NCBI GenBank assembly: GCA_904063045.1
Contig: CAJFCJ010000077.1
Coordinates: 21,229 to 74,748, forward strand
Length of the DNA: 53,520 nt
Direction: 5' to 3'
DNA from: Dimorphilus gyrociliatus
Taxonomy: Eukaryota; Animalia; Annelida
Positions 3-46,458 of this stretch are shown here, one piece after another. The translations under genes were made by a program, and so were the position numbers. Within the stretch, counting starts at the first letter, position 1; the number at the start of each line of letters is the position of its first letter. The notes under the pieces were generated by a model that saw only the letters and a program-made list of their open reading frames with translations, made no database searches and was not told the DNA's origin.

Positions 3-2150
3 GTGGAAAATACTTTTCAAATGCTCTGTCAAGGTTTAAAATTTTCTTCAAAATCTTTAAAACGAATTGACTTGCCCTGTTGTCATTTAAATTATGAGCT
101 AGCTAAATATTTGGCAAATTTATTTACCTTCTGTTCATCATTAGAAACAATTGATTTATCAGAGAATCAAAGAGCACGATATCCATTTAATATGATATGT
201 CATGGACTAGTCTCCTCTTCAGAAACTTTAAAACATATTAATTTGAGAAAAAGTGATTTAAATCCTCAGGCAGCTGAGCAGTTTGGAAAATTGTTTGCAT
301 GCTGTCCATCATTAGAAAGTATTGATTTATCAGAGAATGAAAATATGGGCTGTGAATTTAAAATGATATGTGATGGACTAAAATTTTCTTGCAACACATT
401 AAAACAAATTCAATTGAGAAAATGTGATTTATATTATGAACAAGCTAATTATTTGGGAAATTTAATTAGTTCCTGTTCATTATTAAACAATATTGATTTA
501 TCAGAGAATCAAAACATGGGTTATGAATTTAAAATGATGTGTGATGGACTAAAATCTTCTTCTCAAACATTAAAGCAAATTCAGTTGAGAAAATGTGATT
601 TAAATTATGAACAAGCTAAATACTTAGGAAATATGTTTAGAGTCTGTTCATCATTAGAAAATATTGATTTATCAGAGAACCAAAGCATGGGTTATGAATT
701 TAAAATGATATGTGATGGACTAAAATCTTCTTCTGAAACATTAAACCAAATTCAGTTGAGAAAATGTGGTTTAAATTATGAACAAGCTAAATATTTGGGA
801 AATTTGTTAAGCTTCTGTTCATCATTAGAAAATATTGATTTATCAGAGAATCAAAACATGGGTTATGAATTTAAAATGATATGCAATGGACTAAAATCTT
901 CTTGCAACACTTTAAAACAAGTTCAATTGAGAAAATGTGATTTTAATTTTCAGGCAGCTGAATGTTTAGCAAAGACATTTAGATGGTGTTCAAAAATAGA
1001 ATATATTGATTTGTCACAGAATCAGAGTATGGGGTATGGGCTTAAAAAGATATTTTATAGACAAAATTATTCATTTATGTGCCTAAAAGCAGTTGACCTT
1101 AGAAGGTGTGTTTTAAATAAGGAACAAGCTAAATATCTTGGAGAAACACTTAAACAGTGTTTCTTATTAGAAGTGGTTGATTTATCTGAGAATGAAAGCA
1201 TGAGATCCGGATTTAAAATGATATGTGAGGGACTCAAGTCTTCATTAGCCAATTTAAAACAAATTATGTTAATCTCTTGTTGTTTGAATTTTAAGCAAGT
1301 GGAACATCTTGGAAAATTCCTTAGCATGTGCTCATCAATTGAAGTTATCAATGTATCTAAGAATCAAACTATGGGAAAAAGATTCGAAGCCCTGTGTGAA
1401 GGACTAAAATCTTCTTTCAGAACTTTAAAACAAATTAGCTTTTCCTCTTGTGATTTGAGTTGTAGACAAACTGAATGTCTGGGAAAAACATTAAGAAAGT
1501 TTTTATCATTAGAAGTAATTGATTTGTCAGATAACCAAAGTGTGGGGTATAAATTTGAAAGTATATTTGAAGGAGTCAAATCTTCCTCAACCTCATTAAA
1601 ATGTATAGATTTGAGAAAATGCAATTTAAATTATAGCCAAACTATTAGCTTAAAAAAGACATTTAAACATTATTCAACATTGAAAATACTTGATTCACCT
1701 CTGAATGAAGGTACAGAAATGTTTTTTAAAATATGTTTTGGTCTTAAATCTTCCTTAAATACTTTAAAACGTATTGACTTGCCATCTTGCAATTTAAATA
1801 CTCACCAAGCCGATTATATTGGAGAAATATTTAAACTGTGTTTTCTATTAAGAGTCATAAATTTAAGTTCAAATGTAACAATGGGAAGAGGATTTAAAAA
1901 TATATGTCATGGACTCAAAACTTCTTCAAAGAATTTAAGAGAAATTTCATTGAACAATTGTGATTTAACCTTTAATCAAGCAGAATGGTTAGGAGAAATA
2001 TTTAGGCATTGTTCATCATTAGAATTGATTAATTTATCAAGGAATCCAAATATGGGAAATGGAGTTATGATGATATGTGATGGACTCAAAAATTCTTTAA
2101 AAACTTTAAAACAAATTGATTTGAAGCAATGTGACTTGAATGATAACCAA
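3..2150 (+). CDS. Ribonuclease-inhibitor-type (NLR-type) leucine-rich repeat array, about 12.5 bipartite 57-aa units; 5' end lies outside the window
   Basis: The open frame shows repeating SLExIDLSENQ / TLKQIxLRKCDLN units. The DNA motif attgatttatcagagaa recurs at 150, 321, 492, 663 and 834 (171-bp period). The repeat type matches the C-terminal LRRs of the NACHT genes at 36064 and 39838. Confidence 0.93.
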
Positions 2151-3547
2151 ATATTACATTCAAACTATTTATTTGGAACCATTGTTAGTTTTAACATTTC
2201 AACCATTAAAAACAGAGCTATACTGGATTATGATTTTATCAATCCTTCTTTACAAACTCTTAGAGGATGTTCCATTTATTCCTCTGATTCTTGTCCTCAA
2301 TCAAGTTTACCATTTAAAAAAGCTTTTCCAACAACAATTTATAGATCTAAGAGTGTTGATATTGGTGTTGAACTTGGATTTTATGCTGATGAACTAAAAT
2401 CACAGAAACATATGTTTGATATTAATTTTGAAACATCAAATACAAATAAGAACCAAAGCAGGATGACTGAAAGTCTTTTGAAAAATTGTAACAACTTTTT
2501 AAATTTCCTTTTTCTTTTTTTTTTTAAAATGATATTTTTCCTTTCAGATGAATGTATGGAATATTTGAATAGAATTGAAAGAAATTCTAATTTGAAAGAG
2601 AATCTAGATAGGAGGAAAGGGCATATACATTCTGTTGTTAATTGGCATGAGAATTATGTAGAAATATTTCTATTCATGAAAAGACAGCAAACATTTTCTT
2701 ATTCTGATATTGGAATTAGTATGGTTTTAACAGAAACCTTCTCAGAAAAAGATATTCTTTTTCTTATTAAAATTTTTCCAAATACTATTGAAGTAATCAA
2801 TGATTTAATGATTGAAAAAGAATTAGGCTGGTTAACTGTTCCATTTTTCAAATTAAATTCTGAACTTACTGATAATTATTTACTAGATGGAGACTGGATG
2901 TCTTTTAAATTACTTCCTTTTCACACTTATCATTACCATAGTGATAATACTTTTGAAAGAAAGTCATTCTTTTTCTGTTTATATGTATTAAAAAGCCTGT
3001 GTGAAGGACTAAAATCTTCTTTCAGAACTTTAAAACAAATTAGCTTTTCCTCTTAGATAAATACATAAAACTGGAACAATTTCTACAACTGGCCACAAAT
3101 AGTTGATATATAATTTTTAATTTATTCATTCAAATATATTACCTCAATTCAAATTTTCTTTTTTGTTTTCAAGGTATCAAAGGATCTATTCATTTTGAAA
3201 TTCCTGGCATTGATATATCTAAATTTGAATCCAGTGTTACTCTAAAAATAGAAAATACTAAGGGTGGAACTTCAACGAGTTTATTTGATAATTTCATTTG
3301 CTATAAAGAAATAGGAAAAAAATTAGATAAAGATGAAAATGATGATAAATGCCCAAAGAATTTTATTACATTTACAGAAAAAAATAGTAATTAATTTTTA
3401 AAAACTTAGTTTCAAAATTTAAAGTTTAATTTTTGTTTTTTTTTTTTTTTTTTAAATTCAACAGAAAATCAAGTTAGTTTACCCTTTTCTTTTGTAAGTG
3501 AAAGTTTTTTAGAGGATCCTGAACTATTGAAACAAATTGATGATTCG
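2151..3547 (+). CDS. Non-LRR linker exons (about 400 aa) between the LRRs and the caspase; possible ZU5-UPA (FIIND-like) domain
   Basis: In frame with the LRRs. Predicted introns: 2488-2547 (60 bp, in frame, GT..cag), 2941 or 2977 to 3173, 3387-3464 and 3548-3609; all are phase-compatible. Motif GHIHS...YVEIF...TFSYSDIGI followed by FLIKIFPNTIEVINDLMIEKELGW. Confidence 0.55.
2996..3054 (+). repeat. Exact 59-bp copy of LRR-coding sequence 1391-1449
   Basis: cctgtgtgaaggactaaaatcttctttcagaactttaaaacaaattagcttttcctctt is identical at both positions and in the same reading frame. Confidence 0.97.
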
Positions 3548-3609
3548 GTTTTGTATATAATTTATTAATTATATTGTAATTTATTATTTTTTTTTTTTCA
3601 ATATTTTAG

Positions 3610-4567
3610 TCCTTATTTGATACTAGAGGAAGGCATAAAGCTATAATTATTGTTATCACAGAGAACAGGGAGGTTGGAACAAGGACTGATTTACTCAATC
3701 TTTATGCAGTTTTTAGCAGTTTAAATTATGAAATAGAAGAATGGAAAGATGTTAATAAAAAAGAATTATTAAAAAAAATTAGACATTTGAAAGTGATAGA
3801 AGAGCGGAACAAAGATAACTTAATTAAATCTTTAATTGTGGTTATTCTAGCTCATGGAATAAATGATCATATTATACTAGAAAATGATAAAATATCATTT
3901 GAAGATGTATTATGCCAATTTGATGCTGATTCTTTTCCAATACTTACAGATATTCCAAAAATATTTATTTTTCAAGCTTGTAGAAAAAAAGAATCATCCA
4001 GAGCAATAGGTTTGTTTTATTATATTTATTCACTTTAAAACCAATAGATCAGACCATATAAAATAATGACCTTTGACCAGTACTGTAAAAAGTATATTGT
4101 AACTAAAACTATTAAATAATATTTTCAAATATTCAATAGTAGACCAAGGCAATTCCAGACCCCTTCAAACAGATGCTTCACCTACTTCAGTTCAAAATTA
4201 TCTTCCTTTACAAGAACCAAAAAAGGTGCAATTTCATGAAATGTATTCAACTCTTAAAGGTATTTGTTAATAATTTTTATTGGTTAGAAAATCTTTTGTA
4301 AATTCTTTTGATTTTTTTTTCAAAATAGGAGAAGCAGCTTACAGAACTAAGAGTGGCAGTATTTATATTAGGGGATTCATTCTAGCTATGTGCTATTTAC
4401 AAGAAAGCCGTTTGAGAACTATCCAACAAGTTACAAAATATGTAAACTTTTGGGCAAATCAATCTACAGAAAACATGATACCTAACCAAGTTCCAATTAG
4501 AACAGAAACTCTTTCAAAGGATTACTTTTTCTTTCCACAAAAAAATGAAGGTCAAAAACAAAGTTGA
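3610..4567 (+). CDS. Caspase (peptidase C14) catalytic domain, p20 + linker + p10, in three exons: 3610-4009, 4143-4259, 4329-4567
   Basis: p20 motifs RHKAIII, REVGTRTDL, VVILAHG (catalytic His) and PKIFIFQACRK (catalytic Cys). Linker LQTDA. p10 motifs YSTLKGEAAYR..SGSIYI and ETLSKDYFFF. Phase-1 GT-AG introns at 4010-4142 and 4260-4328. Confidence 0.92.
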
Positions 4568-5225
4568 AAAGGTGACTTTAGTTTGTTGTAAATATATTTT
4601 AGAAAACTATAGACTTAATTCATTACTAATTTGAAATTACAGGTTAAAATATTCCTGTATCATAACTTTACATTTTACCTTGTCTTTGCTCAATCCAACA
4701 AGTTTTATCCTTAATATTTTTTTTATGTAAATAATGTAGTTCATATATCTGAAAACTAAACTTTGCACCTTAGTTGTTTTATTCTTTAAATAAATTTCAT
4801 CTTCTAAAACTTTTTATCTGAGATATTCTTTTCATAAAAAAAATATTTCCAAATTGCCATTTGGGACATTCTTTCCAATTTGTGATGTTCTTTTGGAATT
4901 GGTGTACCGGAATTACTTTATATACATAATTTCTGAGCTGTTTACCAATTAATAATAAAATTAGTTTTAACTGACAAAGAACATGGAAAAGATGCATTTC
5001 AAAATTGTTACATCTTATTCAATACCAGATGCTGAAGAGGAAGGCTTATTTTGGAATTGGCACATGTTCAACAGAACCTGGACAAAACGTCCCATTGACA
5101 AACCATTTTGTGCCTCTCATTCATTGTTGGTTGAATGTAATAAAACTTTCTGAATTGGACTCTCAGAAAAATGAAAATTGTGTATAAATTAATTTTTCCA
5201 CTGGCTCTATTAATTATGAACATTT

Positions 5226-12255: not shown

Positions 12256-12720
12256 TTAATATATATTTTCTATGTAATTGCATTCTTGTAAAGTTAAAGA
12301 ACATTCTGAAAATTTGATCTCTCTTAAAGTACTTGATGAGTTGGAAAGTCCTTGAAATCTATCTGATAATCCAACTCCCATACCAACATTTCCACCTAAA
12401 TCTATTTCTTCTAAGTTGCAACAATTTTCCAATAATTTTCCCAAATGTTTACAAGCATTTCCAAATATTTTACAGAAATTTAAATTGATACTTTTCAAAG
12501 ATTTTGAAGAGGAGCAAAGTCTATCAAGAATATTAAGTAGTCCATTTTACATTTTATGGCAAAAGTCCATTAAAAATCTCTACTAATTCATTATCTATAT
12601 TATGATTTTTACTTAAATTTTGTTCTTTCAATATTTGAGCATTTTATCAATAAATTTTTTATATTTAGACATTGATCTTTTGTCAAATAACAATTTTTTA
12701 AATTGATATCTTTTTTTTTA
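12256..12720 (-). pseudogene. Decayed NLR-type LRR fragment
   Basis: KDINLKNCYLTKDQC..CSNIER, a frameshift and a stop, then LCSSSKSLKSINLNFCK..CCNLEEIDLGGNVGMG. Same 57-aa repeat family as the other LRR arrays. Confidence 0.8.
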
Positions 12721-12863
12721 ATATAGTTTAAGAAAGAGATAGCTTTGCTTTTATTGTGAATTATAACCATTCTAATTCTAAACAATCTTTGATAAGAGAG
12801 ATTGGACGACCTCTATTCTCCTCTTCTGGTGGTTGAGAACGAACTTGTGGTTCTATTTAGACT

Positions 12864-13070
12864 GGAGTTGACAGAAAACGTCCACAAATGAGAAATTTCT
12901 AGACAAAAATTTGGATGGAGAAATGGTTAGGCAAAAGAAAACAGCAACTTATTTGTACTTAGGAGGGTCTCCTCTCAGGGTTAGGGGTAATGGAAAAGGT
13001 TAGGTACAGTTAAGGGCTGGGTTAGGGTTAGGGTAAAAGCACTCATTTGTGGACATTTTCTGTCGTATCC
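12864..13070 (+). mobile_element. MITE-like element with subterminal inverted repeats and internal TTAGGG-like units (copy 1)
   Basis: Arm gacagaaaacgtccacaaatgag (12870-12892) matches the reverse complement of 13042-13064 at 22/23. Internal ggttagggttaggg. Related to copies at 28229 and 34521. Confidence 0.75.
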
Positions 13071-13575
13071 GTTTTTCAACATATATTTGCATTTAAGTGA
13101 AATTTTTTGTAATTTATGTGTTCTTTTGGTTCATGGATGTTTTTTTTTCAGTTTATGGATGTTTTCTTGTGGGTCATGGACACTTTCTTTCTGTTTATGG
13201 ACGTTTTCTGTCGCATCCGTAGGAATTTGTCTCTTTTCATTTTTTAGACAAAAGAAACATAAAGCGCCAACAGTAGAATTTATTCTGAATTGTCAAAAAT
13301 CATACACTGAAGAATTGGATTGGAAGAGACAAGTCTTTTGCAGACATTTCAGAAGATATAAGTGACCTGGAATATTTAACTGATATTGCTCTTTCAGAAA
13401 ATAGAGCTGATTGTACATCTAAAGTCACCAATTTTTATTTATGTTAACTAACCTTAGATTTAATAAGTAGCAAAGAAGAAGGCAGTCAAGAATGGTCAGC
13501 TCATTGTAGTGAGAATAATTGTATTGGACAATATATTAGGGTCACCTGGAAAGTTCTCGTTCTTCTTTTTCAGAT

Positions 13576-15929: not shown

Positions 15930-17852
15930 TCACATATCTGTATTTTCCACGCAACCTCTATACATTACTTTGCAAGTGTCTCCTACTTTTAATTTCACAA
16001 GGCCTGTTCTGGATACTAGCTCAGCATATCTATTATGATTGTTATTCTTGTGTAATGTAAAAGCAATCCCATTGTTTACTTCAATATGAGCCTCAGCTTG
16101 ATGGGCTACTATGCTCAATTCTATAAAATAAGTTGCATTGATTGGTGCTGTAAAAACTCCTGCTCTATTCCATGAATTTGATGTGTCTATTGCTATAGTA
16201 TCAAATGTCAATGTTTTAAGTGTTGAAGAACATTGTGTTAGATTGTTATAACCAAAAACTGCTGGCAACGATTCATTCAACTGAAATGCCGTTATGTATG
16301 ATTCTAACATGGGACTTGTATAATGTCTGCTTCCATGAAGCTGCAATCGTTCATGTGCTTTCATATTGTGCAAAAATCCTCTAGACAAGTGATATGTAGG
16401 CTGCCTATAGCCTCCAAAGTATATTTTGGAATGTATTATAGAATATTTTCCTATAAAATTATTTGTAGAAATTTCAATTTTATGATCACTTTGATGATAT
16501 TTAATTCCACCACCAAAATTGATATAGTATAAACCAGCTTGCCTTGAATATATAATTTGCTTGCTTGGTGACATTGTAAAACCTCTCAGAGCAATGACAA
16601 TATCTAAAGGTTTTGAAGAAGCAAGAGATATTTTATCAGTAGCAGCACAAATATAATTATTGGTTTCATATCTAAAACCAACCCAAGCTGTTTCCTTTCC
16701 TCTTTCTGTTCCAAATAGAATGGAATTGTTTTTATAATGGTTAATAAAAGGTCTATGTATACTGCTTAAGAAATATAAAGCACTTCTTGAAATTGTATTA
16801 GTTGTGGTTCTGTGAGTATACATTATCCTTTTGTATAGACCTACTGTTACACCAGAATTCTCCAATCCCATATAAGTACCTTTTTCAGTTCTTGTTGTTA
16901 TAGAAAAAAAGTACATTCCAGGCTTTTTAATTCGTACTTCTTTTGTCACTGAATTATATAGATTATCATCATTTACATCAATAGAGCTCCACTGAATGTT
17001 TTCAGCATTAACATGTGTTGTCTCTTGCAATGATACCATAAATGCTGGATTTGCAGGTTCTGTACAATTAGGAGATTTACATTCTCTTATATCAATTGGA
17101 GTGCCAGGGCATTCAGGTCCACCATTCTCAGGAATAGGGTTGTTACAATCTCTTCTCCTTGTTTGAATACCATCACCACCACATTCTGGCTCACAGTCAG
17201 ACCAGATTGACCATTCACTCCAACCACCTGCAATGGGGCACTTTGAATCTTTAAGTGGGACACACATTTGAGCACTACATTCTCTGGTATTAACAAATGG
17301 AGTATAAAAATAGCCATCAGGACATTGCTGTGGCTAAGATTCACCATTGTTACAGTGATAGTAAATTCTACAATCAATCAAACTTGGAACAGTATCATTT
17401 TTATTAGGATTACATTCATTTGTCTTAGTAAAACACTGCTTTCCATTAAATTCTAATTCACCAGATGGACATGGAATTGCTTTCTGTGAAAATGACATAG
17501 GGCGTTGTTGAGCAGTTTCCAAACAACCAGAAAATTCAGGATCTACACAGGCAGTTAGACTGCAGTCTGATAAGGAGAATTTAAAGTGAAGTCCAGGTGG
17601 ACATTTCCTTAAATGTGAAGTCCCATTAATACAATGATGATATGTATCACACAAGGAATTATCTCTAAATACCCCATTGATTGGCCTTCCTCTGTCATCA
17701 ACAGGACAGAAGAACGAAGCAGAAATGGTATTATAGAAGGAAAACAGATCTGTAAAATTGCAGTCACATAGAAATAAAAAAGATATTTTATATAATTAAA
17801 AAGATCACATACACAAGCAAAAGAATTGGATTTTCTTAGTAATGACTTCCAT
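15930..17852 (-). pseudogene. Secreted protein: signal peptide, 2 chitin-binding type-2 (CBM14) domains, TSP1 and 3 C1q-like domains; interrupted by one in-frame TAG
   Basis: Exon 1 at 17852-17813 (MEVITKKIQFFCL), intron 17812-17750 (GTATGT..cag). CDTYHHC..CPPGLHF and CRIYYHC..CPDGYFY (CBM14). WSEWSIWSDC..CGGDGIQTRRRDC (TSP1). TFDTIAIDTSNSWN..GVFTAPINATYF (C1q). TAG at 17334-17336 lies in the same frame as both flanking ORFs. Confidence 0.82.
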
Positions 17853-25020: not shown

Positions 25021-28000
25021 CTAATTGTCCTGTATCCGAAAAAAAAAGTCTTCTTTACAAATGGAACAAACTGTACTCCCACTCATAACCAAATCCTTGA
25101 AGCAATTGATATGATAATAATGAGAACAAATGGTTTGAAGACTAAAACTTTCTAATAATTCACATTGGCAAATGCAGCAAACTCTATCTACAATTTTTGT
25201 AGAATAGAGAATATTTTGAATAAGAACAGCGCACGGGTTATCTTCTCTTTTCGTTTTTAGAAGATAGTATGTTATATTCTCTGCTGCTTCTTTCAATTGT
25301 AAAATAGCTTTTTGCCTTGAGCTTACTCTTTTAGATTCAATTGCAAACCAGAAATTTTCTGTTAGACTTTGCACTAAATTAATCATTTGACGTTTTGGAA
25401 GAATATACATTTCCTGTTCAATAAATAAATTATATAGATGATATAATTGATTATGATCTCGATTTTCGAATAAAACACGATAAGGTATTTCGCAACATTC
25501 GCAATCTTCACAATTTTCTTCTAAGCTTTTCTTTATACATTCAATACAATAATAATGTTCAGCTTGTAATCGAATTGAAAAGAAAGGAGGAATTTCATTA
25601 GAACAAATTCTACATAGATTTTCCTTTCTTGAAATCACAACTCTATTTTTAATGGAAAATGTAACTGCTCCGCTTGTTAATGTATATAATTTTTCAATAC
25701 TTGTCTGTAATTCCTTTTTGACAGTTTTTTTTTGACAAAGACGCTTATCTTGACAATTATCCCTTAATATTGAATTTAAGATTTCATCGTTAAAAGTATT
25801 GGAAATTTTCTCCATCGTATTTTCATCGAAAACTGGTATTTTACATTTGCAGAATATTTCATATAGATTATTCAATTTAGTATTATCTCCTTGTTCGAAT
25901 AGGATAACGTATGGTATTTTGCAACATTTACATAAATCCTCTTTAACAGATTTTTTAATACATCTATAACAAAAGTAATGTTGAAATTTTAAGCTGATCA
26001 AATGAATTTGACGAATATTTTTAAAACAAATTTTACATTTTTCATCAACTATTGGTTCTTTTACTATTCTATTTCGAAGAGAGAATGTATACTTTTCATT
26101 GGCAATTTCGAACAATTGTTCAATACATTCGGCTATTTCAGTTGTAATATTTTGAATAGAATCCAAATTTTGATGAAGTATTTCATCGCTAATATTTTTT
26201 GAAATTAGTAACATTTCCTCTTTGGAGAAACAATTGATTTCATTTACAACAAAGAATCCGTAAAGATGTGTTAATTTATCGTTATTTTGCTTTTTCCATT
26301 CCAATAATATCTTATATGGTATATTGAAGCACATACCATTGTTGTCAATATTGTTCATATTTCGCTGTAGACATTTAATACAAAAATACAGCTTGAAAAA
26401 GAATTGAACACCATTATAGGGTTGAATAACTCCAAGGCAAATATTGCATGCGACTCCTTCTTCTATTACTAATGATTTCTCAATACTGTAAGTTGCTGAT
26501 AAATATCGAAATTGTATATTTTTTTCAATGTGTTCCTTAATTTCGAGTTTAAGTATTTCAACAGAAGAACAACCTTGGTTATCGTAGAGAGACTTTATAA
26601 ATGATTCATTAAATTTATCTATATGACAAATAATACCATTTTTAGTTGGTTCTTTAATTTCGTACTCTGTCAGAATTTTACTAAGATATTTTAATTGAAG
26701 ATTAGAAGTACCTCCGTCAAATGTGGCAAAACACCAATAATATTTGAGAACATCTATGTTATTCTGTAAAATTATCTTTACATTTTTAGAATTCGAATAT
26801 TTCCGTCTCAAGATGTTAATTAGATAAATACAACACCTGACCATTACATATATTAAGAGTAGTATGATTGCCAATGTCTGGTGATAAAGTAATAGGTAAA
26901 TATAAGTTAGAATTAATATTATTGGTATGGCAAAATCTAATAATCTAGGAGATTTGAAGATTTCCTTTGGAATGGTTGCCATAAAGTATAAATTATGTAT
27001 GATTATTAGAAATTCATGAACGCTCATCCATTCGTATTCAAGTAATTTTAGACGAATTAACGGTTGATCCTCGAACAATTTTCTATTTGAAGGGTAAATT
27101 AGCATGAGAAAAAGCACTGTTAACGATACGACTGAAGAAGATAACTGAACTGGACTTTTTTTTTCAAATATCTGCATTGCTGTTGAGAGTACTTGGCAAA
27201 ATCCAATGAATAGAATCACCTTAACATAAATATAATCATTTCCATCTCCATTCCGAATGACATATTCGTATCCTTCGCTAATCGGCAAAGAGACGTTGTC
27301 ACTCCAACATTTCAAATCTCTTATCTGAATGATTCCATAATCAGTAGTGTCGATACTCAAACTATTGATTGTAATTAAACTACTCTGAATAGGTTCTGAA
27401 GTTGCTATTAAATACTTTTTGGAAGATTTTCCATTGAATTTTTTAAATTTTTGAAAATGACGTTTCGACGTTATAATTGTAACTTGTAAATAGAATACAA
27501 CTCTATTCAACCAATGTCGAATTGATAAAAAAGGTTGATTTGCATAAGAACTAACTAGAACCGGATTATCCAGATCATTGACATAGATAAGATGTAGTTG
27601 CTCTTTAAATCTCTTAGATTTTTGAATTTTTAAACATATTTTAAAATTTTCATCATTTTTTTTTCTCTAGATTTTTACTTTTGCAATGAATTTCTTCAAA
27701 ATGAAAATAAGATTTTTGCTTAAATGTTTTCAACCAAGAAATATATTCCTTTAATTTCTGTTCAATAAATTTTCTCTCTAAACTTTTCGTACTTTTAATA
27801 AAAATTAATTTACACTTTCTTATTATTGATTTTCTTTGATGTTTTGGTATGAAAGATTCTTCATATGTTGAAAAGTCTTCATTTGTTAGGTCGTGGTTTA
27901 TTTTAGCTAAAGACGTCTTAAAATGATCCAATTCGTGAATATTCCTATAAATTCTCTCTTTGTCATCCGAATTCTTTAGAAAAACATTAAAGTGATTCAA

Positions 28001-36063: not shown

Positions 36064-39000
36064 ATGGATTCAACAGATAAACTTACGTTTAATTACTATT
36101 TAGACGAGATTAAAACCTTATCAAATCAGGAAAGTATACTATTTCTAGCTTATATAGAGCAACTTGAAATTAATAGTTGGGCAAATGTGCAGGATATCAC
36201 TAACAAATTAAAAGATCCTTTGAAAAAAGAAAATATAATTAAAAATTTGCTTAACCACCTTAGTAAACTTTCAAAAGAGAAAACAATTAATATAATAAAA
36301 AAGATTGGTGAGGATGGTAATAAACAAGCTGAGGAATTGAGTGTTAAATTAAACGATCAATCTTCAGTTTGGGAGAAATTAGTAGCTGATACAAAGGAAG
36401 AAAGACAGAAGGATTGTGGTATGATTTCTTTACTTTCATTTAGTAGAGAAAAAAAAGTAAAAATCGAAGATATAAACACTCCAGTTAAACTATTAAAAAT
36501 TGAATATGAAAATATTTTAGAAAGAAAACTGGTAGATATAGACGCGCCTTATGAGAATTTTTTTAGAATATTCAATAGGGAATGTTACAACAAAATCTTG
36601 ATACAAGGTAAACCTGGTGGTGGAAAAAGTGTTCATATGAAAAGTATTCTATACAAATGGTCTAAAACTATTAAGAATAAAAGACTATTTCTATTTCTTA
36701 TTCTAAAGAATATTCAAGGAAACAAAAGCATTTATGAGGAGATAATTGAACAAAACTTTAAAAACATTCCATATATCAATTCTGAAATTATTGAATTATT
36801 TTTTAAGGAAAAGAGAAAAGATGTTGTATTACTTTTAGATGGAGCTGATGAATTTCATCTAGAAAATCATAAAATCAATGACATCATTTATCAATTACAA
36901 CCAAATCTTCCAACTGCAATATGGTCTCGTAAATGGAAAGCTCAAGAATTCGCAGATACTTGCGATATAGCATTTGAACTTATTGGATGGGATATTCCTC
37001 AAATCGAAAATTTCTTTACTAAATGCTTTATTAATGAACAAAAAAGTAAAATGTTTATTGAAGATGTTTTAGAAAAAAATTATAATATTCAAAAATTGTG
37101 TAGTTTACCTATTCTTGCAATGATTCTCTTCCATGTTTGGATAGAAGATGAAAAGATTTCCAATAAATCTCTATACAACATTTATAAAGATTTAGTTGAA
37201 ATTATTCTCAGAAAAAATGAAGTTATATTAAATGACTCGGATAGAAAAAATCTTTACCAATTGTGTTTTATAAACCTTTCAAAGAATAGAATTATCTTAC
37301 CTGAAAATGAAAAAGAACAAAAACTATTTCGGGAAGGTTTAAAAGGACTAATACAGATTTTTCCATCTGAATTTCATAAAACAGAATTACAATTCTATCA
37401 TTTATCATTTCAAGAATTTTTTTCAGCAGAATATATAATAGAATTACTGGAAAAAGAAGATGACGATGGTATAAATACAATGAGTAATTTGGATAATATT
37501 GTCACAGAAACAAATAATACTAGAATCTATAGTGTCATTGATTTTATAAAAGCTTACAGTCAATCTATGTTTAATGATATTATTCTCTCATCTGAACTGA
37601 TAAGAAAAATGTACAATTGTAGTCAAAATGTTGAAGAATTATTATGTCAAGATTGGGATGATTGCGATACAATAATCTTAGAAAATGATGATATTCATGA
37701 TTACATTCTGGAAATTTTATTAAATACGATTGGACAATTTTTAAAAGTAATTTTCATAAAAAATATAAATATGAATATAACATTATTCTTTCAATTAATT
37801 TTGAAAAATGCTAAGAATTTAAATAAACTCATTATTCATCATACCTATTTAAAATTTCAATATTCATACGAGATAGACTTAACTGAAAAATTATGGAATT
37901 TGGAAGAATTTGAAATAAACGATTGTTTTTTGAATAAACAAATTATGATAGATGTTGGTGAAATTTTAAAATTTTGTCCTTCAATAGAAAATTTTACATT
38001 AACAAATTGTACATTATTTGATGATGATCAGAATTTAAAAAGAATTTTTGATGGATTAATATCAAATTTAAAACTAATTAATATTTCAAATTGTAATTTA
38101 AATGATAAACAAAGTCAAATTATTGGTGAAAAACTTCAGTATAATTCAACATTAGAAAATATCGATTTATCATATAATAAACATATTGGGAATTTATTCA
38201 AAAAAATACTAGATGCTTTGGAAACTCCTTGGAAAAATCTTAAACAAATCAAATTGGCAGAATGTAATTTAAATATAGAACAAATTGAAGATCTTTACAA
38301 AATACTTCAAAACTGTTATTCTCTAAATGCTTTAGATTTAACAGGAAATCCAAATATTAGTGAATTGGCAAACAATTTTCAACTTGACTTTTTTAAAAAT
38401 ATTAAAAATATTTTTCTTAAAAATTGTTGTATTAAAAAAGATAATGGAATTTTTTTTGAATCTTGTTCAATGCTACAAAATTTGGATTTATCAGAAAATA
38501 GAATAATGGAAGATGGTTTTAAGAATATTTGTAATGGAATATCTTTATCACGCAATTCTATAAAACAAATAAATCTTGAAAGTTGTTTTCTGACTGAAGA
38601 ACAAGGCGAATGGTTTGGAGATTCCTTGAAAACTTGTACTTTATTAGAAAGAATTAATTTATCATTTAATAGAGTTGGTGAAAAAGCTTTTAAAAAAATA
38701 TTGGATGGATTATTGCCATCATCTACTAAATTAAAAGTAATAGAGTTAAAAAGTTGTTGTTTGACAATTGAAATTGTAGATTGCCTTTCAAGCACATTAC
38801 AAAAATGTACTTCATTACAAAGTATTGATTTATCTGAAAATGAGAAATTAGCAGATGGATTTCAATGTATATTTAAAAAATGTACAAAAGATTTAAAAAT
38901 TATTAAAATTTCAAAATGTAATATTAATGAAACAGATTTTGAAGATTTATTACTGAATTACAATTCATTAGAAGTTATTGATTTTTCTTTTAATGAAAAA

Positions 39001-39285
39001 ATTGGTAATGGATTTCAAAATATTTGTAAAAAATGGACAAATGGAATTTCTTCTCAACTAATTGAAATAAATTTATCTTATTGTAATCTTTCTGAAAACA
39101 ATGGAATATGGTTTGGAAAAATGCTTTGTTATTGCAAAAATATAATAAATCTAGATTTATCAGGAAATGATAAACTTGGAAATGGAATTGATGAAATTTT
39201 TAAATGCTTCAAATTGTGTATGAAATTAAAATTTATCAAATTATCAAATTGTGGAATTACTTTAACTTCCTGTACATTTATGTGA
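36064..39285 (+). CDS. NLR-like protein: N-terminal helical (death-fold-like) domain, NACHT and LRRs; single exon, intact
   Basis: Walker A ILIQGKPGGGKS, Walker B VVLLLDGADEF, FYHLSFQEFFSAEY and RNI-type LRRs; 1073 aa open. Confidence 0.93.
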   Translation: MDSTDKLTFNYYLDEIKTLSNQESILFLAYIEQLEINSWANVQDITNKLKDPLKKENIIKNLLNHLSKLSKEKTINIIKKIGEDGNKQAEELSVKLNDQSSVWEKLVADTKEERQKDCGMISLLSFSREKKVKIEDINTPVKLLKIEYENILERKLVDIDAPYENFFRIFNRECYNKILIQGKPGGGKSVHMKSILYKWSKTIKNKRLFLFLILKNIQGNKSIYEEIIEQNFKNIPYINSEIIELFFKEKRKDVVLLLDGADEFHLENHKINDIIYQLQPNLPTAIWSRKWKAQEFADTCDIAFELIGWDIPQIENFFTKCFINEQKSKMFIEDVLEKNYNIQKLCSLPILAMILFHVWIEDEKISNKSLYNIYKDLVEIILRKNEVILNDSDRKNLYQLCFINLSKNRIILPENEKEQKLFREGLKGLIQIFPSEFHKTELQFYHLSFQEFFSAEYIIELLEKEDDDGINTMSNLDNIVTETNNTRIYSVIDFIKAYSQSMFNDIILSSELIRKMYNCSQNVEELLCQDWDDCDTIILENDDIHDYILEILLNTIGQFLKVIFIKNINMNITLFFQLILKNAKNLNKLIIHHTYLKFQYSYEIDLTEKLWNLEEFEINDCFLNKQIMIDVGEILKFCPSIENFTLTNCTLFDDDQNLKRIFDGLISNLKLINISNCNLNDKQSQIIGEKLQYNSTLENIDLSYNKHIGNLFKKILDALETPWKNLKQIKLAECNLNIEQIEDLYKILQNCYSLNALDLTGNPNISELANNFQLDFFKNIKNIFLKNCCIKKDNGIFFESCSMLQNLDLSENRIMEDGFKNICNGISLSRNSIKQINLESCFLTEEQGEWFGDSLKTCTLLERINLSFNRVGEKAFKKILDGLLPSSTKLKVIELKSCCLTIEIVDCLSSTLQKCTSLQSIDLSENEKLADGFQCIFKKCTKDLKIIKISKCNINETDFEDLLLNYNSLEVIDFSFNEKIGNGFQNICKKWTNGISSQLIEINLSYCNLSENNGIWFGKMLCYCKNIINLDLSGNDKLGNGIDEIFKCFKLCMKLKFIKLSNCGITLTSCTFM

Positions 39286-39837: not shown

Positions 39838-42822
39838 TCAATATTTAAGTGTTGTTCCTAGATATTTAGCTTGTTCATCATTCAAAAAACACTGTTCAAG
39901 GTTAATTTGTTTTAAATTCTTTGAGGAAGATCTGAGTCCTTCGCATATGACTAGAAATCCATGTCCCATATTACTGTTTTTTGATAAATCTAGATTCCTT
40001 AAGGAGAAACAATGTATTAAGTTTTTTCCTAACTTTAATGATATGTCAGGATTGAGTTTGCAATCTGATATATGAATATTTATCAGTGTACTTTTAAAGT
40101 TATTAAAATTTATATAAAGGTGGGGTTCAGGAAAGTTAAATATGATGAAATTTTTTAGATTTGTACATTTGGAAAGTAGATTAGGTGTTCTGCTATGTAA
40201 CCTTTGTAGTGTTGTATATTCACTTATATTAAATGTCTCTATGGTTTGGCTAAGTGCTTGAATAAAGTCCTCTAAAATGTTATATCTATCAATAAATTTG
40301 ATATCATATAATTCAACTGGAAAATGAAGCATAGAAATTAATTTTTTTTTCAATGCCCATTTTAAACATTCCAAAGTATCTTTTTTTAAAACTGTTAATG
40401 GTTCACTATTGACAGTTTCTTCCTCATTGACATTATTAAAGAAAATTTCAATATTCTGAATATTGAAAACTCTAATCTTTATAGTATTTAATAGTAAAAT
40501 ATTTTTATAATCAGACATAACTGTTTTGTGAGTTGTTATAGAAATATTTCCTACATAACTATAACAGTTTATGAAAAATTCATTATTTGGGTCTTTTATT
40601 GAACTATTATTTATCAGTATTTTCTTAAATCCATGTTGCTTTCTTTTAAATTTTAAAACTTCAAAAAAGCTATCCATTTCTTTTGCATAAAGAATTTTAT
40701 TTTTTATTATTATCTCATGAAGATATGGATGTTCTTTAATAAATTTTAATGGATATTCTTTGTAAAAAATTTCCGAATTGTATGATATATCAATTAAACT
40801 TGTAAATTGTCTTCCAAATACAACTTCAATCATCCAATTTGTCTGTAATTTATCACTGGAAATAGTTAATTTTTGAATTTTTTCTCCTGATGAAATATTT
40901 CGCTTTCGTTGTACTAATACTCTAGTAATATTAATATTTAAATATGTAATATTGGTAGAAGTTATCATTGCTAGGAGTTGTTCATAGATCATATTATAAG
41001 AAAAGTGAATATCCTTATTCTGTATATCAATGTTTTTTATTAATGGAGAATATAGAGTAAGTTGATTGAATAAATAATAAATACTAATTGATGTGTTGTA
41101 GATGTAAATATCCTGTAAATATCTTCCTCTAATTTCTATTAATAAGTTAATTAAAGTATCATTTAAATGTTCATTTTTTAAAGTAATCTCTTTGCAATTT
41201 TCTAAACCACTTGATAAATAATTTTGTACCTTATCACTACAATCAAACATTTGCTTAGCAATTCGTGAAGCGAGTAGAATATTTTGAAAAATTGTTTTAG
41301 AATATTGTTGAACAAAATCTAAAGTGTTGTATATCTTTATATTATTAATTTCTTTTAAAATTGAATCTAAACTTTTTTCTTCATTTGAACAAATTTCCAA
41401 TGTTGAAATATTTTGTTTATTTTTTCTTTGAAATACTTTTATTAAATATTTAGCTGAAAAGAATTCTTGAAAAGATAAATGATATAGTTGTAACTCTTTC
41501 TTTTTCAATTTACTTGGAACAATATCAATTAAACCTTTTAAACTTTTTTCAATAGCCTTTTCACCAACTGAATCCATATTAAAGATAATTTTACTCTTTG
41601 AAAGATTAATAAAACATAATTGATAAATTTCTTCAATGTCATATTGAATTTCATTTTCAGGTTCTAAATTTTTCTCTTGAACTATATTGATGAAATCATC
41701 ATAAATTTGAAATAGAGTTTTGTTAAAAATGTAACCTTTTTCTTTCCAAATATAAAATAGAATCATAGCTAAAAGTGGTATTTGGCATAAATTTTGTATT
41801 CTTGGATGTTTATTAACAATATTTTCAACAAATTGTATTGAATCTTCAATATTTTCTGTTAAAAAACATTTTTGAAAGAAAGTTTTCATTTGTTGATTAT
41901 TCCATCCAGTTAATTCAAATGCAATATCACAAGTACTTAGGATTTCTTCTCCTTTCCATTTTCTAGTCCAAATGGAAGTTGGAATATTGCAGTTCGCTCC
42001 GTTGATTATATCATTGAGTTTATGATTTGAAAATTGAAATTCATCTGCTCCATCTAGTAATAAGATTATATCTTTTGTCTTTTCTTTAAAAAATAGTTCA
42101 ATAATATTTTCATTAACATATTCAATATTTTTAAAATTTTGTTTACAAATCTCTTGATAAATTGTTGTGTCTTTTTCAACATTTCTTAAAATAATGAATA
42201 CACACAATTTTTCATGATTAGTATTCCATTGATTATTTGCCCACATATGAATTATATTTTTCATATGGACAATTTTCCCTATTCCTGGTTCTCCTTGAAT
42301 TAAAAGCTTATTAAAATCTGTATAAAACATTTTATAGAAGTTTTCATAATCTATTTCTGTATTGATGAGTTTTGAATCAATAATATCTTTTTGAACAATT
42401 TGTGATATTTTAATGGATGTAACAATATCAGTAAGTTTAACTTGTTTAGTTTTACCAAATGGTAGTAGCTTAACTGTTGAGAAATCTTTTCTTCTTTCTT
42501 GTTTTGTATCAGAAATCAATGTTTTCCATACACATTCAGGATTATTTAAATAGTGGACCAAATCTTTGCTAATATCACCCATATCTTGTAAAATATCAAC
42601 AATATGTATCAATTTAAAGTTTTTCAAAATTTTAATGAGCTGTACAATAGCTTCACTATTTTGTTTTTCATATTGATATTTTAGTAGATTATTTGCATCT
42701 ATGGAAATGAGTCTTTTTGAAACTAAATGATCACAAAACAATTCAAAGGCTAATGGCTGATTTAGTAAGATTTTAAAATTGTCAATATAAAAATTGAAGC
42801 ATAATTTTTGTATAGAATCCAT
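39838..42822 (-). CDS. NLR-like paralog: CARD/death-like, NACHT (degenerate P-loop GKI), long insert and LRRs; truncated by an in-frame TGA
   Basis: Probable ATG at 42822 (MDSIQKLCFNFY, paralogous to MDSTDKLTFNYY). LLIQGEPGIGKIVH, LLLDGADEF and YHLSFQEFF. TGA at 39838-39840 falls at a consensus Cys. Confidence 0.9.
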   Translation of the reverse strand: MDSIQKLCFNFYIDNFKILLNQPLAFELFCDHLVSKRLISIDANNLLKYQYEKQNSEAIVQLIKILKNFKLIHIVDILQDMGDISKDLVHYLNNPECVWKTLISDTKQERRKDFSTVKLLPFGKTKQVKLTDIVTSIKISQIVQKDIIDSKLINTEIDYENFYKMFYTDFNKLLIQGEPGIGKIVHMKNIIHMWANNQWNTNHEKLCVFIILRNVEKDTTIYQEICKQNFKNIEYVNENIIELFFKEKTKDIILLLDGADEFQFSNHKLNDIINGANCNIPTSIWTRKWKGEEILSTCDIAFELTGWNNQQMKTFFQKCFLTENIEDSIQFVENIVNKHPRIQNLCQIPLLAMILFYIWKEKGYIFNKTLFQIYDDFINIVQEKNLEPENEIQYDIEEIYQLCFINLSKSKIIFNMDSVGEKAIEKSLKGLIDIVPSKLKKKELQLYHLSFQEFFSAKYLIKVFQRKNKQNISTLEICSNEEKSLDSILKEINNIKIYNTLDFVQQYSKTIFQNILLASRIAKQMFDCSDKVQNYLSSGLENCKEITLKNEHLNDTLINLLIEIRGRYLQDIYIYNTSISIYYLFNQLTLYSPLIKNIDIQNKDIHFSYNMIYEQLLAMITSTNITYLNINITRVLVQRKRNISSGEKIQKLTISSDKLQTNWMIEVVFGRQFTSLIDISYNSEIFYKEYPLKFIKEHPYLHEIIIKNKILYAKEMDSFFEVLKFKRKQHGFKKILINNSSIKDPNNEFFINCYSYVGNISITTHKTVMSDYKNILLLNTIKIRVFNIQNIEIFFNNVNEEETVNSEPLTVLKKDTLECLKWALKKKLISMLHFPVELYDIKFIDRYNILEDFIQALSQTIETFNISEYTTLQRLHSRTPNLLSKCTNLKNFIIFNFPEPHLYINFNNFKSTLINIHISDCKLNPDISLKLGKNLIHCFSLRNLDLSKNSNMGHGFLVICEGLRSSSKNLKQINLEQCFLNDEQAKYLGTTLKY

Positions 42823-44198
42823 TTTGTAATTGCTCTTTAAAAAAGTTATGTTATCTGGATGTTTAAATATTATCTGTAAAATAAATTTATTTCTATTAAG
42901 TGAAACTCCAAGCAAAAAGAGAAGTGAATTTTTACTAGTGTATCTACAATGGCATAGAATTCATGAATCTTAAAAAGCATTTCAAAAGTGCACAACATAA
43001 AAAACACATTATAAAAATTTTTGCTTAGTCATGATTATTGTTCTGCAGGTATAGAGACCTACTAAAAATTTTATTACTTGTTTATAGACAATAAAATGTG
43101 TTTCTAATTAACAATCTCTAACAGTAAAGTTCCTTTATAGCAATTTATTTTTAAAAACTACAGGAAATGGAAATACTGTACAATCATTAATATGATTATT
43201 AAAAAAAATGAATAAATTTGTAAAAGAAAAACTTACATATTACTCCTTTTAAGTTGTTTAATGATGCTTGTTTAGTGGTTGAGCTCTTCATATTACAATT
43301 CTAGAAATATGTAAATTTGACACAACATTCCTTGAAATAAATAGTTAACAGTAGCATTCTGCACAATGCCCAACCAGGTGTGTAGGTAGATACACAAAGT
43401 CGCCTTTGGGGTTTACACACTGTACATTCATTTATAATGACATTTTCATATTTAGACTGTATATATTACTGCTAAGGTCTGAGTTTGGCCAAATGGTGAT
43501 TGGCCAAATTTTGTTTTCAGCCTGTCATCCAGGCCTCTTTTGGTGTGTCCTATGCACCTATTCACTGTTTCCAGCTTCTGTGTCACACTCATTTTTCCTG
43601 CGTTCTTCGCCGTTACAAAGTTATTTCAGAGAGTAAACAAAATTTGATATTTTACAAGATTTTGCTTCCTTGTATTATGAATTTATAAAGAAAAAAAAAT
43701 TTTAATCTCCTTCAAAGTTTTGCCATAGTAAAAATGCTATTTGAGAGAAATTTGAAAAACAGTTTCTTTACTCAAGTTGCATATTAGCAAAATATCAAAT
43801 ATATTATTCTGCTCTAATATTACTTTGTTTAATTGCTTGAGAATATTCTTTAAATGTGCTGAAGATTTTTAAGGTTTTCTAGTGTTTTTCTTAAATATAT
43901 TTAATACACAAAACACTATTGAAATTACTGATACAACTGTCACTTCTTTTGGATAATTTAATACATAAATTGAGTAGTAATGGAATTTATCCTATATAGA
44001 GAAAAGTATAATATTGAGTAATTAGTAAGTAAAAATATGGTAAACTACCAACTTGAAATATTATCATTAAAAGGAGAAATTGTGAAGCAACAAAGAAAAT
44101 TACAGCTAATATCTATGAATAGAATTTACTAGAAATTGAAACAAGGGCAGTAAAATGTCAAGTGTATCTATGAACTAACTTTTACACTTACTATTTCT

Positions 44199-45486: not shown

Positions 45487-46458
45487 ATGAATGAAACTTT
45501 TGAAATATCTTATAAAAAATCAGTGGAATTGGGAAATACATTCTTAAAAATAAAAGATAATTCAATATTTATTTTAATATCATCGATTTACGGTTTAATT
45601 ATGGCATTTGGAATATTTGGAAATATTGCAATAATCATTATATTTTCCAAAGGAAAACTCTATAAAAATACTCAATACGGCTTTTTTCTTCGTTTCATCG
45701 CCTATATCGATCTATTTTCTTGTTTAATTTCGTTTCCGCTAATTTATCATAGAGACATTCAAAATCGTTTTTTGCCTATATCCAATCCGTTTATTTGCAG
45801 TTTTATAATAGTTTTGCAGGGTGTTTTTCCCTGGACATCAGTAAGTATGCTACTATTGATTTCAATAGAAAGATTTATAGTCATTGTGAAACCATATACA
45901 AAGATCAGTAAAAAGAAATGGAGAATAGTCAATTTAATTTATGTTTTGTTCATAATTTTTATATCATGCCTTTACTCGGTTGAAAATGATAGTTCAACGG
46001 GAAAGTATTTATGCTACACGTCCGGATCAACGTCTATATATGGAGCTATTGTTTTAAATATAGTATCAAGTGGGATTGTTGGTATTCCAATCATTTCGAC
46101 TTGTCTCTATATAATCATGTTTTACAAACTTAGAAGACAAAAATCTTTAATTGGATTGAATTCTACAACTCAAAATGAAGAGAATAGTATAAAAACACAG
46201 CAAAATAGGAGAAGAACAATTAAACAGATGCTTATTTGTTTCTATCTAGTAATGTTTTACATAATCTTTACAATTCCAATACTTTTATCCGCTTCACGAG
46301 TGTTGAAAGCCAGAGAATCAGTATTCTATCATATTATCTATTTAAATAATGTCATCAATTTCATCATTTATTTTTCAAGATTAAAGACATTTAGATTATC
46401 TTTTAAAGCACTTTTCAGTAATTCATCACTGGCAAAGATTAATATATCTACTCAGTAA
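45487..46458 (+). CDS. Class A (rhodopsin-like) GPCR, single exon
   Basis: Seven hydrophobic segments: TM1 GIFGN, TM2 IAYIDL, TM3 C...SIERF and TM7 NNVINFIIY. Confidence 0.92.
   Translation: MNETFEISYKKSVELGNTFLKIKDNSIFILISSIYGLIMAFGIFGNIAIIIIFSKGKLYKNTQYGFFLRFIAYIDLFSCLISFPLIYHRDIQNRFLPISNPFICSFIIVLQGVFPWTSVSMLLLISIERFIVIVKPYTKISKKKWRIVNLIYVLFIIFISCLYSVENDSSTGKYLCYTSGSTSIYGAIVLNIVSSGIVGIPIISTCLYIIMFYKLRRQKSLIGLNSTTQNEENSIKTQQNRRRTIKQMLICFYLVMFYIIFTIPILLSASRVLKARESVFYHIIYLNNVINFIIYFSRLKTFRLSFKALFSNSSLAKINISTQ

Follow-up and report, generated by a model that had tools for sequence, protein, structure and literature searches.

Positions 3 to 4567 on the forward strand of a 53,520-nucleotide stretch of the genome of the small marine worm Dimorphilus gyrociliatus raise the question of whether an immune-type sensor and a caspase can be encoded together in one chain. 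The whole stretch (contig CAJFCJ010000077.1 of assembly GCA_904063045.1) is here called the window, and its base 1 is base 9810 of the locus record L001. To our knowledge, death-fold adaptors are the sole route by which animal NLRs and PIDD1 engage caspases. At the locus studied here, an array of leucine-rich repeats (LRRs) is followed by parts of a middle module and then by a caspase. From its sequence we favor, with modest confidence, the reading that it is the 3' part, as far as this can be read, of one gene, DgyrCDS14786, which belongs to a family with the order sensor, module, caspase, is internally deleted, and is predicted to encode a fusion chain. The family of fusion genes looks real at the level of DNA, and the copy in the window would be either a shortened variant or a young pseudogene.

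Reading frame and exon chain of the window gene

The LRR array lies in an open reading frame (ORF) of 1017 amino acids (aa) at 3-3056, in which units of 171 nt span positions 15 to 2192. A first-pass annotation of the window, made from the letters alone, had matched these repeats to those of two NACHT genes further along, and the match was borne out by protein comparison. An alignment of 478 aa between the window LRRs and those of the NACHT gene at 36064 shows 33% identity (E = 4e-56), and the window LRRs also match the NACHT gene at 39838 (E = 5e-18). The window gene thus has C-terminal LRRs of the ribonuclease-inhibitor type that are homologous to the LRRs of NACHT proteins, as is characteristic of NLRs. 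Past the array, over the 301 codons of 2151-3053, the LRR frame contains 0 stops and the two remaining frames contain 21 and 43. Shuffled versions of this segment contained a mean of 24.9 stops and were stop-free in 0 of 20000 cases. These data agree with the earlier proposal that the LRR array continues in one open frame into a non-LRR region.

The 3' end of the locus encodes a caspase. The Pfam profile Peptidase_C14 matched the exon at 3610-4008 alone with an E value of 3.2e-16 and matched the annotated protein with an E value of 2.2e-21 (77.1 bits against a cut-off of 21.4), covering profile positions 2-232 of 233 and with them both subunits. When the protein was aligned with reference caspases, LAHG and QACRK fell on the catalytic His and Cys, with Lys in place of the final Gly of QACxG. 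In the small subunit, AAYR...GSIYIR aligned with SWR...GSWFIQ, a pairing in which the S1-pocket Arg and the GS-x-x-I motif are kept. The alignment thereby confirms the His and Cys that had been called intact in the first pass and adds the S1 Arg to them. The window caspase carries all catalytic residues and is a predicted protease. In profile searches, neither the annotated protein nor the linker pieces matched Death, CARD, DED, or PYD.

The two ends are joined by a predicted chain of GT-AG exons running from 3-2487 to 4329-4567. As had been proposed, the chain is phase-consistent, has canonical sites at all junctions, and reaches the caspase in frame, and its product is 1309 aa long. Its introns measure 60-233 nt and have 8-24% GC; its exons have 25-36% GC. 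In the D. gyrociliatus genome, the median intron length is 66 bp and both operons and trans-splicing are absent (PMC7854359), and the short, GC-poor introns of the chain are typical of this genome (PMC7854359). The first of them, a candidate intron at 2488-2547, is in frame and stop-free, so that read-through would leave the ORF unbroken.

The LRR-caspase fusion is already a public gene model. GenBank protein DgyrCDS14786 (1112 aa) corresponds exactly to exons 192-2487, 3174-3386, 3465-3552, 3627-4009, 4140-4259, and 4329-4567; compared with the chain of the first-pass annotation, it skips 2548-2940 and makes two small junction choices of its own. Two caspase-bearing paralogs, DgyrCDS14372 and DgyrCDS14409, were found by an exhaustive HMMER search, and both contain sequence homologous to the skipped segment, exon 2. 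Exon 2 matches residues 1189-1266 of DgyrCDS14372 (E = 2e-6) and, in DgyrCDS14409, residues 1-81 (E = 1e-3). Judged by these paralogs, the exon 2 that the GenBank model skips is conserved coding sequence. Since the homology passes 2940 and reaches approximately 2990, the donor that follows 2976, which the first pass had offered as an alternative, is favored.

Domain order and middle module in the paralogs

The order of sensor, module of approximately 420 aa, and caspase recurs at three further loci, L002, L006, and L009. Paralogs with the LRR-to-caspase order were searched for and were found at L002 and L006, and L009 has the order NACHT, module, caspase. This recurrence indicates that sensor, module, and caspase have been linked repeatedly.

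L002 (contig CAJFCJ010000034.1) contains DgyrCDS14372, which has an LRR array, a complete module, and a caspase fold and is 28-29% identical to the window gene over linker and caspase. It is a pseudo-caspase in which the catalytic His is changed to Asp, the Cys is changed to His, and the S1 Arg is lost. Directly upstream, at L002:676-2766, lies an unannotated NACHT ORF of 696 aa (Pfam NACHT, E = 2.5e-13) that matches the NLR of the window with an E value of 3e-30. The NACHT ORF is in frame with the LRR ORF, and the sole separator is a TAA inside a candidate 99-nt GT-AG intron (2669-2767), whose donor is GTAGGT and whose AG acceptor is rich in pyrimidines. The public model of DgyrCDS14372 is therefore probably truncated at its 5' end, and the full protein is probably NACHT-LRR-module-pseudo-caspase.

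L006 and L009 are AT-rich Logan contigs from sequencing runs SRR23372229, SRR23372216, and SRR23372228. At L006:2-5407 (SRR23372229), a single uninterrupted ORF of 1423 aa holds the LRRs and the whole module. Its LRRs match those of the window with an E value of 4e-67, its module matches that of DgyrCDS14372 with an E value of 3e-17, and a caspase exon with His and Cys follows 670 nt downstream. L009:3081-9377 contains a NACHT-like ORF, the module, and the caspase. As read from these sequences, LRRs make up the sensor of the family, preceded by NACHT in at least two members besides the window gene (L002 and L009). So far, members of the family are known from D. gyrociliatus and from AT-rich Logan contigs only. 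The Logan assemblies also hold six or more different exons that encode a caspase large subunit with both His and Cys (P0014, P0037, P0042, P0060, P0063, and P0065).

DgyrCDS14409 consists of module and caspase and has no LRRs. It starts directly with the module, and no LRR lies within 4 kb upstream. A member of this form lends some weight to a reading of the window locus as two genes, in which an NLR-type gene would end within 2487-3056 and a separate module-caspase gene would start at Met 2556 from an internal promoter. An in-frame ATG does lie at 2556, right behind the 60-nt candidate intron. We consider this arrangement improbable, because LRR and module share one ORF at L006 and lie 90 nt apart within one annotated gene at L002 and because the species has no operons (PMC7854359). 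The LRR frame is stop-free before 3054, and so an LRR transcript reading this far would carry a stub of the module anyway. In addition, the stretch that runs from exon 2 to past the catalytic Cys is devoid of in-frame Met codons, which makes an independent start of the caspase unlikely.

DgyrCDS14372 and DgyrCDS14409 share approximately 300 aa beyond exon 2 (E = 5e-29), and with L006 and L009 included the module comes to its approximately 420 aa. The module probably consists of a beta-sandwich with a ZU5-UPA-like part after it, and on its sequence features we consider the ZU5-UPA-like assignment likely. In 4 of 4 complete members, an F-S or F-C followed by x-H-G/D occurs downstream of a ZU5-like motif. 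In PIDD1, NLRP1, and CARD8, the F-S bond at the corresponding position is self-cleaved. When complete modules were scanned with profiles, no member reached the Pfam cut-off; the L006 module matched Pfam ZU5 with an E value of 0.023 and 15.4 bits, under the cut-off of 21. A PDB profile search with a complete module returned the ZU5 domain of ZO-1 as its sole sequence hit (motif lvdCkPdGlkF, E = 0.56). Among the Atlas feature hits of a complete module, the named ones were dominated by ZU5, UPA, and FIIND clusters, with scores of 0.70-0.78. Each of these signals is weak, but they converge.

The first part of the module was modeled separately. An AlphaFold model of exon 2, with a predicted local distance difference test (pLDDT) score of 72, shows a beta-sandwich. 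Its matches to ZU5 and FIIND chains had Z scores of 3.3-5.0, below those of unrelated top hits (Z = 7.3), and an assignment of the exon-2 domain to ZU5 was not adopted because these structural matches rank below unrelated folds. Searches of the PDB, AlphaFold DB, and ESM Atlas with the same model gave generic beta-sandwich matches only, all Foldseek E values were >0.1, and an Atlas feature search with exon 2 returned nothing informative. Single-sequence AlphaFold of DgyrCDS14409 reached a pLDDT score of only 34.

Internal deletion and state of the window copy

The copy in the window keeps the first approximately 125 and the last approximately 45 residues of the module, and approximately 300 aa are gone. 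Its homologous blocks are collinear with those of DgyrCDS14372 and DgyrCDS14409, with a spacing between blocks of approximately 65 aa here versus approximately 390 aa in each paralog. The ZU5-like core with its motif and the F-S/C-x-H-G motif lie in the deleted stretch, so that the window gene has no F-S self-cleavage motif. The FIIND, ZU5, and UPA profiles gave no match at E values of ≤10 to window positions 2130-3053 or to the annotated linker. The term FIIND-like, which the first pass had applied to this region, thus does not fit the window copy.

A 59-nt patch identical to part of an upstream LRR unit is found at the breakpoint of the deletion (Table 1), and the stop codon that ends the long ORF, TAG 3054-3056, overlaps the last base of the patch. 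A chance origin of the patch is ruled out by its 59/59 identity, compared with a likeness of 60-75% among LRR units. We infer that the deletion was repaired by a templated insertion from the upstream LRR unit in an end-joining-like process, and the perfect identity suggests that the event was recent.

An independent short-read contig (run X1) equals window positions 1420-3025 with no differences, and more contigs tile 3025-5034. In a bisulfite run, the changes were C>T only. A misassembly near 2150, which the first pass had considered as a possible source of the join, was looked for in the short-read contigs and is ruled out by the exact contig that spans this point. More broadly, the region is rich in repeats and prone to gaps, and the LRR array could have been wrongly joined there to a caspase locus; gaps flank both the window locus and its closest paralog, and the path of the short-read graph through the 59-nt repeat is ambiguous. 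We regard such an artifact as very improbable, however, since the contigs cover the region as described, both junctions of the patch are present in short-read contigs, and three further loci share the domain order, including two from independent Logan assemblies. These contigs end at points at which a 31-mer graph is expected to break.

As had been noted, the ORF runs open to the window edge; the reason is an assembly gap of 1609 N (L001 8201-9809) that abuts window base 1 on its upstream side, and the edge thus offers no further readable sequence. No NACHT was found within the 8.2 kb beyond the gap upstream of the window. The earlier guess of an upstream NACHT is supported in the paralogs L002 and L009, and for the window copy itself the upstream sequence is the gap. 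Upstream of the gap, L001:3880-7993 (minus strand) contains a series of retroelement-like ORFs, which measure 361, 440, 170, and 123 aa; the 123-aa ORF is integrase-core-like. Gaps cut the 5' side of both the window gene (L001:8201-9809) and its closest paralog, DgyrCDS14463 (L003:6347-9940), whose caspase begins 4 nt past its gap, and both loci seem hard to assemble.

The state of the window copy is best judged against the alternative of a young pseudogene, in which the deletion and patch broke an ancestral fusion, leaving an LRR-stub ORF that ends at TAG 3054 and an untranslated, still undecayed remnant of caspase exons. Several observations point in this direction and weigh against a working fusion. 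The deletion took out approximately 300 aa of conserved module and left the exact 59-nt patch at its breakpoint. The paralogs have no intron at the position of 2940/2976-3174 in the window, and the donors at 2940/2976 and the acceptor at 3174, which restore the frame, are therefore new, non-ancestral sites. Should the splice to 3174 go unused, translation would end at TAG 3054 and leave the caspase exons dead. Since the deletion seems recent, the intact caspase exons say little about function after it. The 5' end of the gene lies inside the gap, with a retroelement beyond it. Counting against the fusion reading itself, the Cys motif is QACRK instead of QACxG; every ZU5 or UPA signal falls below the significance threshold; and word-index protein searches for relatives of long or middle length returned no transcript-derived fragments, only the gene's own GenBank protein or nothing.

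Nevertheless, we consider a pseudogene somewhat unlikely. All seven predicted exons (7/7) are open in an AT-rich genome, in which a random frame would contain approximately 25 stops per 300 codons, both alternative donors (2940 and 2976) keep the frame, and the catalytic residues are intact. Between the caspase exons of the window gene and those of DgyrCDS14463, the nonsynonymous rate (dN) was 0.23 and the synonymous rate (dS) was 0.53, and the resulting dN/dS of 0.43 indicates past purifying selection that belongs mostly to the time before the deletion and is silent on the period since. The single-chain reading that we favor is supported in silico by the anatomy of the DNA and its homologies and, at the level of the family, by the recurring domain order of the paralogs; for the window copy, it depends on a predicted splice across the deletion scar.

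In the family, ligand sensing by the LRR/NACHT part would drive oligomerization, by which the built-in caspase domains would be brought together and activated without CARD, death domain (DD), or PYD adaptors. Alternatively, it would lead, after cleavage at the F-S/C motif, to the release of a UPA-caspase fragment, with the same outcome for the caspase domains. If the window copy is transcribed, only the oligomerization route would be applicable to it, and activity by this route would require the predicted new splice from 2940 or 2976 to 3174. A more far-reaching scenario, which we regard as distinctly doubtful, is that D. gyrociliatus, and perhaps related dinophilids, possess single-chain "inflammasomes" of the form NACHT-LRR-FIIND-like self-cleaving ZU5-UPA-caspase together with pseudo-caspase regulators and that the window gene is an expressed, functional short form whose LRR sensor acts on its own caspase without the ZU5-UPA step.

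Table 1. Predicted features of the DgyrCDS14786 locus in the window
Feature	Positions	Strand	Details
NLR-type (ribonuclease-inhibitor-like) LRR array	3..2150	+	171-nt (57-aa) repeats, about 12.5 in all; open toward the assembly gap that begins at the window edge
Non-LRR tail, in LRR frame	2151..2487	+	112 aa without a match to any family; followed by donor GT at 2488
Candidate intron, 60 nt	2488..2547	+	GTAACA...TTTCAG, 18% GC; in frame, stop-free
Exon 2, N-terminal beta-sandwich of conserved middle module	2548..2976	+	motif GWLTVP; donor 2941 or 2977; absent from GenBank model
Exact copy of part of an LRR unit	2996..3054	+	59/59 identical to 1391-1449; isolated LRR fragment between non-LRR sequences at deletion breakpoint
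Exon 3, last part of module and pre-caspase linker	3174..3386	+	LFDNFICYKE aligns with paralog DgyrCDS14372
Exon 4, linker	3465..3547	+	GenBank donor 5 nt further on, with different acceptor
Exon 5, caspase large subunit	3610..4009	+	His codon 3853-3855, Cys codon 3979-3981
Exon 6, inter-subunit linker	4143..4259	+	exon chain, GenBank model
Exon 7, caspase small subunit	4329..4567	+	AAYR...GSIYIR; stop TGA 4565-4567; AATAAA at 4789

Elsewhere in the window, the two NACHT-LRR genes lie tail to tail at 36064-39285 (plus strand) and 39838-42915 (minus strand), with Pfam NACHT E values of 3e-8 and 1e-8, respectively; neither has a module or caspase downstream of its LRRs. Further ORFs encode a protein with TSP1 plus C1q (15930-17267, minus strand), an 829-aa protein with a RING finger at its end (25021-27510, minus strand), a rhodopsin-type G protein-coupled receptor (45487-46458, plus strand), and a receptor fragment with LRR plus seven transmembrane segments (48118-49194, minus strand). 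Word depth in run X1 was very high at 12719-13112, 4926-5122, and 592-788, with values of up to approximately 62000, 4300, and 2500, respectively, versus approximately 100-200 nearby. These peaks point to high-copy repeats or shared k-mers.

Comparison with known sensor-caspase systems

The first-pass annotation knew of no earlier description of such an architecture, but the architecture is not without precedent: DgyrCDS14786 is a public model, and LRRs-caspase proteins were predicted in amphioxus in 2008 (PMC2575513). The amphioxus study predicted LRRs-caspase and TNFR-caspase hybrids with QACXG sites and proposed that they link recognition directly to apoptosis; its list of models verified by reverse transcription-PCR or cDNA includes TNFR-caspase and no LRRs-caspase model (PMC2575513). 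The window gene and the amphioxus LRRs-caspase share an architecture, a single predicted chain in which LRRs precede a caspase whose site is of the QACXG type. The amphioxus prediction comes from another phylum, and neither a ZU5/UPA-like module nor NACHT is reported for it (PMC2575513). Database matches show that amphioxus also has Roc-COR-caspase models. A survey of lophotrochozoan caspases that includes D. gyrociliatus found species-specific annelid pro-domains other than CARD and DED (bioRxiv 10.1101/2023.12.11.571055). These comprise kinase, TIR, Z-binding, ROC, ankyrin, and subtilase domains and a lipoprotein attachment-site profile; LRR, NACHT, and ZU5-UPA pro-domains are unreported there (bioRxiv 10.1101/2023.12.11.571055). 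A literature term search for names of sensor-caspase fusions found nothing further. Sensor-caspase fusions exist as database models, and the combination of sensor, module, and caspase presented here is undescribed in the literature searched.

A second kind of fusion is represented by P0059, a 1737-aa protein from a metagenome (L005:1001-6214; ENA ERZ25766962) in which NACHT, a faint Roc match, CARD, and caspase are encoded in one ORF. That P0059 is a single chain is certain, because this ORF is uninterrupted over 5214 nt. It resembles the Dimorphilus family in having NACHT and caspase in one chain and differs in having a CARD between them and neither LRR nor module. On its contig, which comes from a eukaryote, the ORF is flanked by TAF1-subunit and LSM genes.

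A natural chain that unites a sensor, a ZU5-UPA-like module, and a caspase would offer a minimal system for testing adaptor-free, proximity-induced caspase activation, and FIIND-type "functional degradation" could likewise be tested in it with no adaptors involved. Such a chain would further illustrate the reshuffling of innate-immune wiring in a very compact genome. For such work, the complete members (L006, L002, and L009) are better targets than the window copy, whose main use would be as a record of the decay or remodeling of such genes by deletion with a templated patch.

Among known death-signaling proteins, NLRP1 is NACHT-LRR-FIIND-CARD and CARD8 is FIIND-CARD. The Dimorphilus family is like them in having an NLR-type sensor, then a probable ZU5-UPA-like module, and then a death effector; the paralogs carry F-S or F-C where FIIND proteins self-cleave, and they give weak ZU5/FIIND signals. 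It differs from them in that its C terminus is the caspase itself and not a recruiting CARD and in that no FIIND, ZU5, or UPA match is significant. The window copy differs further, being without the ZU5-like core and the F-S/C motif.

PIDD1 is LRR-ZU5-ZU5-UPA-DD, and the PIDDosome recruits caspase-2 via RAIDD. In contrast to PIDD1, the window protein has no death domain, its LRRs are of the NLR/ribonuclease-inhibitor type, and at least two members of its family have NACHT. The likeness to PIDD1 lies in the succession of an LRR part, a two-part beta module, and a death-signaling end and, as a concept, in the activation of an initiator caspase by proximity.

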